From the NCBI GenBank assembly GCA_977016875.1, contig CDRNST010000359.1, positions 620,001-684,000 on the forward strand: a stretch of DNA of 64,000 nt. Reading direction: 5' to 3'. Of this stretch, positions 24,111 through 27,100 are shown piece after piece. The first letter of the stretch is position 1, and each line of letters begins with the position of its first letter. The translations under genes and the position numbers were made by a program. This DNA is from Pavona decussata. Taxonomy: Eukaryota. The notes beneath the pieces were generated by a model. The model ran no database searches and was not told the DNA's origin. It saw only the letters and a list, made by a program, of their open reading frames with translations.

Positions 24111-27100
24111 CTATCTACTCACAGAGGAGGTCAACTGCTCTTGTCCGCCTAATTCTAGTGAAACGTCATCACCAATGAGTACAAATGGAGCCCAGTAATC
24201 CACTGCACTAAACTCGTCAGATTCTCTCATGGAGTTCATGGCTTGGTTCAGAGCTGCACTGGCACTTTCACCTTTCATTAAGTGCTGATAGAATCTTTTC
24301 ATGAACTCCATAGTAGCCTCGTCATCAATCGCCCACAATGACACCAGAACAGACCGAGCACCAGCACCCAAAAATGCCCGTGCGATGCCAACCACACCCT
24401 CAGCCTTAATCTCCCCACGGCCACTATGAGAGCAACTCAGCACAACCAACCTTGCTCGCATGTGAACATTCAGTACATCTTTCATTGTTAAAAGAAAGTC
24501 TTTCTCGATGGGAGTCCGTGATAACGGTGACGGATTTGGTGCTAAGAGAATTTCTCCTGTTTCCATTCGCCCATGTGCTGCAATGTGCACCAAAGCAACC
24601 GAGGAGAGGCGTTTCAATACTTCATTCTTCGTTGCATGCTCTCCAATTAGCGGCGTAGTGTGAAGTATTCGTCCAATCATTTGCGATTCTTTTCGTGCGA
24701 ATGGCAGCTGCGGCCACTTTGTCCCCTCAAAAGTAACCTTTTCGATCCAAGGATCACCCACGATCAGCGCCCCACTGTTAATGTGGTAATCAGCGGGACA
24801 TTCTGCGATTAATTGCAAACTCGTCAGTGATGGAATCACGCGGATTCTGAAAGATTCGCAGAGGTACTTGGAATCTGAGTCCATGAATGCAGCGAAAGGA
24901 GCCAAACACAATGGACCCTCTGGAACGAATATCACTTCATTGTCAAGTAACAAATCTTGTATAGGACTCACGATGGTCTCATATAGTAAACTTAAGGCAC
25001 TGTTCCAGCAACTGGAGGATTGATTTTGCTTCTTCCCGGGAGGGGTTCTTGCATCTGAAAGATTTTCACGAATTTTCTTTAGCGTGGTATCCAAGAAATC
25101 TTCGGCATCAAGTTGGCCATCGGGGATCCGTTTTGCTCTTCGCTGTACATCCTTTCCTTTCTGTAAAACCCAAAAATTTACTACTTGGTTTCCGAGCGCT
25201 ATGAAAACTGCATTGGAAGAAAGATAACTGTAAATGTCAGTTATGTTTTTTATTTCTGTGCAAGATTCGGCTCGGGTGTCTTTGGATGCATACTTGAACT
25301 CCATGAGATCATTCAGAGCCTGTGCACGTCCCTGCTCGGCACATAAGAGTGCCTCCACAACCTTGCCTTGCTGTAAAAGCAAACGCAATAAAGTAACATA
25401 TACTGTTTGGTACAAATGGCGAAAGCTCACCTTCCAGTCATCATTAAACGCAAGATCGCGCCTTACATTATTAAACGTCTTTATACTGTGTAAAAAACAT
25501 TCTTCAGCTTGGCATAAAGAACCAATAAATAAAAAGGTAACTCCAAGGTTATTAAACGCATTGCCAATGAAGACTTTGTCGCCCACTTTTTTTGCGATTT
25601 CCAGGCAACGTTCATGGTAATGTATGGCTTTTTGTAAATCTCCGAGTTTACCATAACTACTACCTAGATTACAATACATCTTTCCTTCACTTGAGACATC
25701 TCCTACTTTTCTTGCGATTTCTTGGCAACGTTCATAGTAGTGTATGGCTTTTTGGAAATCTCCGAGTTTCTGATAATCGGTACCTAGTTTACCATATGCC
25801 GCTCCTTCACTTGTGACGTCTCCCACTTTTCTTGCGATTTCTAGGCAACGTTCATGGTAGTGTATGGCTTTTTGGAAATCTCCGAGTCCCAGATAAGCGC
25901 TGCCTAGACAACCATACGCCGTTCCTTCACTTGAGACGTCTCCCACTTTTCTTGCGACTTTTAGGCAAAGGTCATGGTAGTGAACGGCTTTTTGGAAATC
26001 TCCGAGTTCCTGATAATCGCTGCCTAGAAAACCATACGCCCTTCCTTCACCTGAGACGTCTCCCAGTTTTCTTGTGATTTCTAGGCAACGCTCATGGTAG
26101 TGAACGGCTTTTTTGAAATCTCCGAGTGCCTGATAACCGTTGCCTAGATTACCATATGCCCTTCCTTCACTTGACACGTTTCCCACTTGTTTTGCGATTT
26201 CTAGGGAAAGGTCATTGTAGTGAATGGCTTTTTTGAAATCTCCGAGTTTCTGATAATCATGGCCTAGCTCAAGATACGCCATTCCTTCACTTGAGACGTC
26301 TCCCACTTTTCTTGCGATTTCTAGGCAAAGGTCATGGTAGTGAACGGCTTTTTGGAAATCTCCGAGTCCCTGATAATTGCAACCTAGATTACTGTATGCC
26401 CTTCCTTCATTTGAGACGTCTCCTACTTTTCTTGCGATTTCGAGGCAACGTTCATGGTAATGTATGGCTTTTTGGAAATCCCCATGACTGTAATAAACGT
26501 TCCCAAGATGACAACAAATTTTCTCTTCTTGTAATTTGTCTCCCGTTTCCTTTGCAATCTTAAGTTCATGGCCATAGTATTGCAGTTTTGCTTGGAGTTT
26601 TCCGGGGATGTTATTACCAGAGGTCCAACTTTTTCTACAGCTGTCATTTGCATCTCTGCCTTTTTTCTGTCAAATATAAACATAACTGTTTTTCGAAACG
26701 ATTTTGTTCAACTTGTGGAAGAAATGGAAATAGGAAAAAGGTGCTTGCTGATCATGTGTTTTAAACTAGCTGTTGAAATAGGCTCCTTACTGTCAAATGT
26801 TAAATAGTGTAATTTATTTTGAATCTACTTAATCGATTTCTAGTGGAGGAAACGAGTAAGCTTTTACAAAGAATTTTAATAATCTTAATTGCCATCATCA
26901 TCGTCATGATCATCATCGTCACTGCCGACATACACCAACAACTGATGCAAGGCGGGTAGGAAGACAAGTGGTTGATCGTCTTTTATATTATGTAAATCGA
27001 GAAAAGCAAAAAAAAACGAAATATAGACAATGACACACTAAAATTTTCCCATTTTAAAAGTGGGAACAAGTTGTAACAGAGGTTAACAAGGAGATCTTTT

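Follow-up and report, generated by a model that had tools for sequence, protein, structure and literature searches.

We analyzed a 64,000-nucleotide stretch of the genome of the coral Pavona decussata (GenBank assembly GCA_977016875.1, contig CDRNST010000359.1, positions 620,001–684,000 of the forward strand; hereafter the window), and describe here one of its genes, which encodes an array of tetratricopeptide repeats (TPRs) followed by a caspase-like CHAT domain. Our reading, to which we give a probability of about 0.6, is that this is the TPR array of a member of the coral TPR-CHAT family in which the positions of the ligand groove diversify and whole repeat units turn over, probably yielding a germline-encoded set of binders tied to a protease-type effector. 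The evidence for this reading comes from the architecture of the gene and the size of its family, the LGN-type repeat fold and the placement of the variable residues on it, the pattern of substitution at those residues across the family, and the turnover of units among the arrays of paralogs.

A nine-unit TPR array and its variable residues

The array lies in the terminal exon of the gene (24111–26669, minus strand), a single open frame of 852 codons with its stop codon at 24111–24113 and an AG acceptor context just 5′ of the exon. The encoded protein has a pre-array helix followed by nine TPR units, after which come a helical linker and the CHAT domain. Tandem Repeats Finder reports a period of 120 at 25578–26480 (7.5 copies, 84% matches, zero indels), and reading in frame resolves this region and its margins into nine in-register units of 120 bp, or 40 residues, of the type found in LGN (25464–26543, minus strand). 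Unit 0 (26424–26543, minus strand) is degenerate and cap-like at the N-terminal end, is positionally conserved among paralogs, and shares 65–73% identity with units 1–7. These seven units (25584–26423, minus strand) are 78–90% identical to one another in DNA and combine a conserved scaffold with variable codons at unit positions 5, 8, 11, 12, 15, 16, 18, and 19. Unit 8 (25464–25583, minus strand) is a degenerate C-terminal unit with 37–42% DNA identity to the others; it keeps the register and is predicted to form a helix pair. As the initial annotation of this DNA had stated, the whole array is contained in one exon, since array, linker and CHAT domain share the one uninterrupted frame, and the same holds in intact paralogs.

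That annotation had also listed seven strings of variable residues (R/SN/CN/QG to K/CN/SS/GK), which match units 1–7 exactly at positions 8, 11, 12, 15, 16, 18, and 19. The seven positions it named are correct, but the list is short of position 5 and of position 33 in helix B, both of which are also highly variable across the family. Its description of the scaffold as almost invariant even in DNA went too far, given the DNA identities of units 1–7 and an amino-acid identity among the window units of 79% at the 33 scaffold positions, compared with 22% at the seven variable positions and 69% overall. Many scaffold codons are nevertheless identical through the third base in all seven of these units, for example GGA, GAA, CTA, GAT, AAA, and GCC.

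We placed the variable positions on the TPR fold by alignment and by modeling. A sequence match against the PDB pairs the array gap-free with the 40-residue TPRs of LGN/GPSM2 (E = 5e-51), and in HMMER alignments to consensus TPR proteins each unit carries a six-residue insertion. From these alignments, the canonical TPR position equals the unit position minus 6, and the seven variable positions therefore correspond to TPR positions 2, 5, 6, 9, 10, 12, and 13. An AlphaFold2 model built on a 45-sequence alignment gives the array a predicted local distance difference test score (pLDDT) of ∼88–95 and assigns unit positions 3–20 to helix A and 23–40 to helix B. A Foldseek search with this model returns 4wnd_A as the best LGN match, with a target TM-score of 0.89 and a root-mean-square deviation of 2.1 Å over 326 columns, and the scores of the LGN structures range from 0.75 to 0.89.

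The distribution of variability was then described independently of the window gene, in 291 units from 20 other paralogs. There, the highest entropies are found at positions 8, 18, 5, 19, 15, 33, 11, 12, and 16, and the high-entropy positions of helix A all fall within 81° of one direction. In a helical-wheel test, the entropy moment of helix A was reached by 7 of 10,000 permutations (P ∼ 7e-4), and no moment was found for helix B in the same test. In published comparisons, variability is greatest at TPR positions 2, 5, 9, 12, 13, 33, and 34, all on the concave face, and the co-chaperone HOP binds its ligands through TPR positions 2, 5, 6, 9, 12, and 13 (PMC1261162). The NuMA peptide bound by LGN sits in an inner channel toward which helix A of every repeat is turned (PMC6525239). 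Taken together, the helix assignment, the helical-wheel test, the LGN superposition and the literature make it well supported that the variable residues occupy one face of helix A, lining the predicted ligand groove. The initial annotation's assignment of these residues to helix A and the groove thus gains support from the HMMER and LGN mapping, the one-face entropy moment and the published contact positions; the structural model it had called for, an AlphaFold2 array superposed on LGN, likewise puts them on the channel-lining helix.

Selection and unit turnover in the coral TPR-CHAT family

The window gene is a member of the coral-specific TPR-CHAT (TTC28-like) gene expansion, as shown by its multi-repeat TPR region, its single C-terminal CHAT domain and the size of its family. 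Pfam assigns TPR_12 (E = 5.7e-77) and TPR_7 (E = 4.5e-42) to the array, the N-terminal multi-repeat TPR part of the protein (PF13424 / PF13176). The 602-Mb genome to which the window belongs, searched in six frames, gave at least 112 matches to the linker and CHAT part out of 476 first-look candidates, many of these matches lying in tandem clusters on a few contigs. A word search found 5552 database proteins at E ≤ 0.001, of which the few with names are from Stylophora pistillata ("tetratricopeptide repeat protein 28") and Oculina patagonica. The family thus resembles the published coral TPR-CHAT proteins in its very large copy number, its tandem clusters and its widely varying TPR length, whereas the window copy departs from them in standing alone among esterase genes, outside any TPR-CHAT cluster, and in carrying Ser in place of the nucleophile Cys.

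The expansion itself has already been published (2018, 2022, 2025), and the window gene is no new kind of system. As far as the accessible portions of these papers go, TPR-CHAT copies number 276–304 in Acropora and 6–362 in other corals, with up to 362 in Pocillopora and widely varying TPR length (DNA Res 2025, PMC12314368); the TTC28-like family is significantly expanded in Montipora (PMC9145168); and in Pocillopora damicornis the CHAT domain is also found on many coral-diversified TPR proteins (PMC6208414). The same portions treat copy number and TPR length, and we found in them no account of a 40-residue register, groove hypervariability, a dN/dS excess or unit-level duplication. A full-text literature search likewise returned no report of such a site-level picture for coral TPR-CHAT genes, in a partial library that leaves novelty unproven. 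What may be new is therefore this site-level picture: a strict 40-residue LGN-type register, hypervariability of groove positions with more nonsynonymous than synonymous change per site (dN > dS), and duplication and exchange of whole units.

Among the units of the window array, Nei-Gojobori estimates (NG86) are dN = 0.77 and dS = 0.21 for the seven variable codons and dN = 0.10 and dS = 0.18 for the 33 scaffold codons. Because this choice of codons was made post hoc within the array, we tested the same class on the wider family, using 268 distinct units, of which the window gene supplied only 8; these units gave 117 disjoint closest unit pairs with at least 85% identity. In these pairs, the ratio of nonsynonymous to synonymous differences per site (pN/pS) is 1.66 for the seven-position class (bootstrap 95% confidence interval 1.37–2.01, with pooled pS as denominator) and 0.55 for the other positions, and it reaches 2.0–2.4 at positions 8, 18, and 19. 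In a stricter test, the window gene was excluded, only codons with a single base difference were counted, and CpG transitions were dropped from the nonsynonymous count alone; at the class level this still gives 127 changes against ∼92 expected, a ratio of ∼1.4 by hand sum of the per-site table. That ratio is a lower bound, and the 58 multi-hit codons discarded in this test are concentrated at the variable positions. The linker and CHAT part evolves between paralogs with an omega (dN/dS) of 0.3–0.45. These results support diversifying, or at least diversity-maintaining, selection of modest strength on the groove positions of the family as a class. The dN/dS comparison that the initial annotation had proposed, done mainly on units of other paralogs, thus comes out above 1, and the claim behind it holds at the class level only.

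The arrays of the paralogs also differ in their composition. Twenty paralog exons carry 7–26 units each, in the same 40-residue register and starting at the same exon residue. Unit 0 of the window array is 92–94% identical to the first units of paralogs, and 17 of 22 first units have a fellow first unit as their best match elsewhere; in comparisons with the window gene, the last unit likewise finds its best matches at the same end of other paralogs. Internal units have their best matches at unrelated positions of other arrays, without positional orthology, and for 173 of 275 units the nearest relative lies in another array. Unlike the window array, some paralog arrays contain nearly or fully identical unit pairs: units or two-unit blocks are 97–100% identical in L035, L038, and L031, including 100% identical blocks in L035 and L038, and the unit duplications in these three paralogs are very recent. 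Between L049 (G000:C36:4437733-4445833) and P0030, an allele-like pair with 98% identity, 12 of the 29 amino-acid differences fall at residues 407–456, across a unit boundary, and this patch of ∼50 residues looks like a conversion tract from another unit. The overall pattern is one that unequal exchange within a single-exon array would produce.

As a separate observation, L047 (G000:C198) and L048 (G000:C39) carry 24-unit arrays whose units are 100% identical to each other, on opposite contig strands; the pair stems either from an uncollapsed haplotig or from a very recent segmental duplication.

These observations can be joined in one mechanism. The nine LGN-type TPRs form a superhelix in which helix A lines an inner channel, with the CHAT domain following in the same exon. 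Across the family, the canonical ligand-contact residues change faster than silent sites while the packing scaffold stays under purifying selection. Whole 120-bp units are gained and lost in frame, likely by unequal recombination or slippage between units of the single exon, and such gain and loss reshuffles the channel. The likely result would be a germline-encoded set of many binders with differing specificities, each tied to a protease-type effector domain. By analogy with the repeat domains of fungal NOD-like receptors (NLRs; PMC4986451) and with the prokaryotic TPR-CHAT proteins Csx29 and DdvA, we infer that binding of a channel ligand would control the CHAT protease, and that the ligands could be non-self or danger-related. 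A recognition-repertoire function is likewise putative.

The CHAT domain, linker and genomic setting

The CHAT caspase-like domain (24168–24995, minus strand; residues 559–834) matches Pfam PF12770 with E = 1.4e-58 over profile positions 4–289 of 289, and aligns to the CHAT domain of DdvA with E = 0.003. His699, in an AAHG motif (24573–24575, minus strand), is an invariant column of the 45-sequence alignment. The column of the CHAT nucleophile, which aligns with the Cys of the DdvA LAAC motif and is Cys in at least 90% of the 45 relatives, is occupied by Ser747 (TCT; 24429–24431, minus strand), immediately preceded by Cys746. The His-Cys catalytic dyad is thus incomplete in the window copy, with His699 kept and the Cys changed to Ser747, and the same Ser is found in a second haplotype described below. 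Judged from these residues, the window copy may lack catalysis and serve instead as a binder, regulator or decoy. A candidate Cys allele, TGT at 24430, was seen in contigs at several times single-copy depth; it was taken as paralog-derived and set aside.

Between the array and the CHAT domain, the linker (24996–25463, minus strand) is helical and disordered, according to the secondary structure of the model and its low-pLDDT segments. Relative to most close paralogs it has a 17-residue deletion, at ∼25060–25080 (minus strand), where close paralogs mostly carry an extra segment after a KKIR motif. In the same linker, contigs of three sequencing runs (X5, X7, and X2) jump 108–109 bases at 25172–25290, with unknown letters between and non-canonical ends; this skip may be a paralog-derived or allelic indel and does not resemble an intron.

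Probable upstream exons of the same gene lie at 29560–34173 on the minus strand, where the sequence reads as two short three-TPR modules with acidic linkers; the gene model as a whole is unproven. Most paralog exons are preceded by the same exon-like pieces, whose order is unchanged. The run contigs yielded no splice joint linking the terminal exon to an exon upstream of it. Both three-TPR modules end their exon at a GTATCCTT donor, at ∼32357 and ∼30372 (minus strand), a U12-type 5′ splice-site consensus. Contigs from two runs of RNA type, as guessed, cover the terminal exon up to ∼26599, with none at 26600–27599, and runs X1 and X2, of unrecorded type and probably DNA, cover every bin. The evidence that this gives for transcription of the terminal exon is weak, because close paralogs could contribute such contigs.

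The gene is flanked by five two-exon genes of the carboxylesterase type (COesterase), at 5139–14986 and 50853–59647, two on the minus strand and three on the plus. At 43899–44747 (minus strand), an open frame of 282 residues resembles the C-terminal part of a non-LTR (long terminal repeat) retrotransposon reverse transcriptase.

Alternative explanations, known systems and meaning

Several results weigh against a diversifying binder repertoire, beginning with the age of the window array. The dS among its units, 0.18, equals the dS to the nearest paralogs (0.15–0.19), and the highest identity of any unit pair within it is 90%; there is therefore no active homogenization of this array, contrary to the initial description of its repeats as homogenized. 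By this measure, the array is old and stabilized, with an age close to that of the gene duplications. The syntenic locus, with the same esterase neighbor, is present in an independent ENA assembly. This second copy is probably a haplotype of the same species, because several of the bases at which it varies are seen again in run contigs of other samples from this organism. Its exon has equal length, no indels and 27 substitutions in 2559 nucleotides, 14 of them nonsynonymous (8 inside the array) and 13 synonymous, with an overall omega of ∼1/3 by rough count. It encodes the same nine units in the same order, with zero changes at the variable positions. Three further near-identical pairs likewise have no change in unit number across the parts compared, so that unit number changed in none of the one full and three partial allele-like pairs, short-read unitigs being unable to resolve the arrays. 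Repeat shuffling as initially annotated hence stands for the family, with its differing unit numbers, identical blocks and lack of internal positional orthology, and not for the window array. Variation of this copy between individuals was not borne out in number, order or variable residues, in what is a single comparison and not decisive.

Other points on the same side concern the strength of selection and the effector. In the stricter per-site test, no single codon passes Bonferroni correction. An omega of ∼1.4–2 is modest and could come in part from selection retaining old differences while the scaffold was homogenized. The nucleophile Cys is replaced by Ser in the window copy, and any ligand, expression response or protease activity is hypothetical.

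Sequencing runs offered a further view of the array. Their Logan contigs are pieces of ∼90–330 bp drawn across a multicopy family, too short for unit number or order, and among the differences listed inside the array in them (25584, 26064, 26066, and 26089) none falls at a variable codon. A candidate one-unit deletion in run X2, joining 26154 to 26281 (126 letters skipped and 6 inserted, net 120) with just 20 letters on its shorter side, was rejected. Between the two haplotypes, we also observed a local peak of diversity around the TPR-CHAT exon: the 6 kb around the gene (22582–28587, compared with L051) are 96.3% identical, or 3.7% divergent, and the flanks at 34967–36669, 32337–34807, and 14645–17569 are 99.3–99.6% identical, or 0.4–0.7% divergent.

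The stability of the window copy is what an ordinary TPR scaffold of fixed specificity would exhibit, in which the units touch different parts of one conserved endogenous partner, as LGN does with NuMA, and their differences are old divergence following duplication. Both the second haplotype, which matches in unit number, unit order and every variable residue and has an overall omega of ∼1/3, and an array as old as the gene duplication agree with such a scaffold, and variability of groove positions is general to TPR proteins (PMC1261162). We nonetheless regard this explanation as rather doubtful. Independent unit pairs from paralogs give a class-level pN/pS significantly greater than 1, and a single conserved partner leaves unexplained the size and turnover of a family with more than 100 paralogs, 7–26 units per array and recent duplications.

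The Cys-to-Ser change and the 17-residue deletion relative to paralogs, together with the visibly broken state of paralogs L035, L045, and L050, could instead mark a decaying copy under relaxed constraint, whose protease function is lost and whose variable codons drift. This is quite unlikely, as relaxation cannot raise dN above dS, the scaffold is still under purifying selection (omega 0.55), two haplotypes both keep the 852-codon frame open and show fewer nonsynonymous changes than neutrality would predict, and contigs of RNA type lie on the exon and none on the adjoining intron. A collapsed or mis-joined array is highly improbable, because, hard as multi-paralog 120-bp arrays are to assemble and much as short-read unitigs fragment there, the frame is intact, the register is strict and the independent ENA assembly stays colinear over the entire exon, which is equally long in it and differs by 27 substitutions and no indels.

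LGN is a conserved polarity protein with eight old, diverged repeats followed by C-terminal GoLoco motifs. The coral array shares with LGN/GPSM2/Pins (PDB 3sf4, 4wnd, 6hc2) the 40-residue TPR variant, gap-free at 33% identity and with TM-scores up to 0.89, and a superhelix in which helix A lines an inner peptide-binding channel. In the coral gene, by contrast, recent repeat copies are followed by a CHAT domain, and the family has grown enormously. The 25 best Pfam families listed for the window protein include no GoLoco family. Since CHAT stands in place of GoLoco and the family exceeds 100 copies, the window gene is no LGN ortholog.

The initial annotation drew a parallel to fungal NLRs, and HET-E, HET-D, and Pa_2_10340 do carry highly conserved WD, ANK, or TPR repeats (Dyrka et al. 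2014, PMC4986451). The likeness lies in the mode of evolution, with near-identical repeats that form a superstructure, positive selection at a few positions of the concave face and variation in repeat number (PMC4986451). The two systems differ in degree and in population pattern: the fungal repeats studied were chosen for an internal conservation of more than 85%, compared with 69% in amino acids and 78–90% in DNA for the window array; fungal repeat number is polymorphic between alleles, whereas the window array is unchanged between two haplotypes; and fungal TPR units mostly have 42 residues rather than 40. Pfam finds no NOD domain (nucleotide-binding oligomerization domain, NACHT or NB-ARC) in the terminal exon, and the candidate upstream exons, which read as TPR modules, were not scanned as a spliced protein. 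The parallel therefore holds for how the repeats evolve and fails for NLR architecture, and with no NOD domain found the window gene is no NLR.

Prokaryotic TPR-CHAT proteases, such as Csx29 from type III-E CRISPR Craspase and DdvA, share the order of a TPR region followed by a CHAT caspase-like domain, and they are among the whole-model Foldseek matches (including 8eey_B, 8eex_B, 8rw5, and 8rot_A). They differ in that identity is only 13–14%, the coral gene is without CRISPR or anti-sigma context, and recent copies make up its TPR part as a regular tandem array. A TPR array combined with CHAT is found too in human TTC28 (TPRBK), which has been linked to mitosis and cytokinesis and after which coral homologs were named TTC28. 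According to the accessible portions of two papers, metazoans outside the anthozoans mostly have one or two such genes (PMC12314368), and the canonical TTC28 ortholog of acroporids forms an orthogroup separate from the expanded family (PMC9145168).

A bolder form of the binder repertoire, which we offer as possible but tentative, is a sensor-protease repertoire without NOD domains. Hundreds of TPR-CHAT genes would carry differently coded channels, reshuffled by gain, loss and exchange of 120-bp units and shaped by selection on the groove, and ligand capture would activate CHAT, or in Cys-less copies modulate it, for cell death, symbiont control or allorecognition. If true, this would be an animal counterpart of both fungal NLR repeat diversification and bacterial TPR-CHAT conflict systems.

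For the window copy itself, the finding has less reach: this copy is a stable member of the family, possibly dead as a protease and among the least dynamic. For the family, the TPR-CHAT expansion has so far been described, in the accessible portions of the literature, by copy number and TPR length, and its variation is now shown to be concentrated in the groove, above the silent rate, with turnover of whole units. Corals are, to our knowledge, without adaptive immunity. A diversifying binder tied to a protease is a concrete hypothesis that points to specific residues for mutation and specific arrays for genotyping, and it bears on how corals may discriminate pathogens, symbionts or conspecifics.

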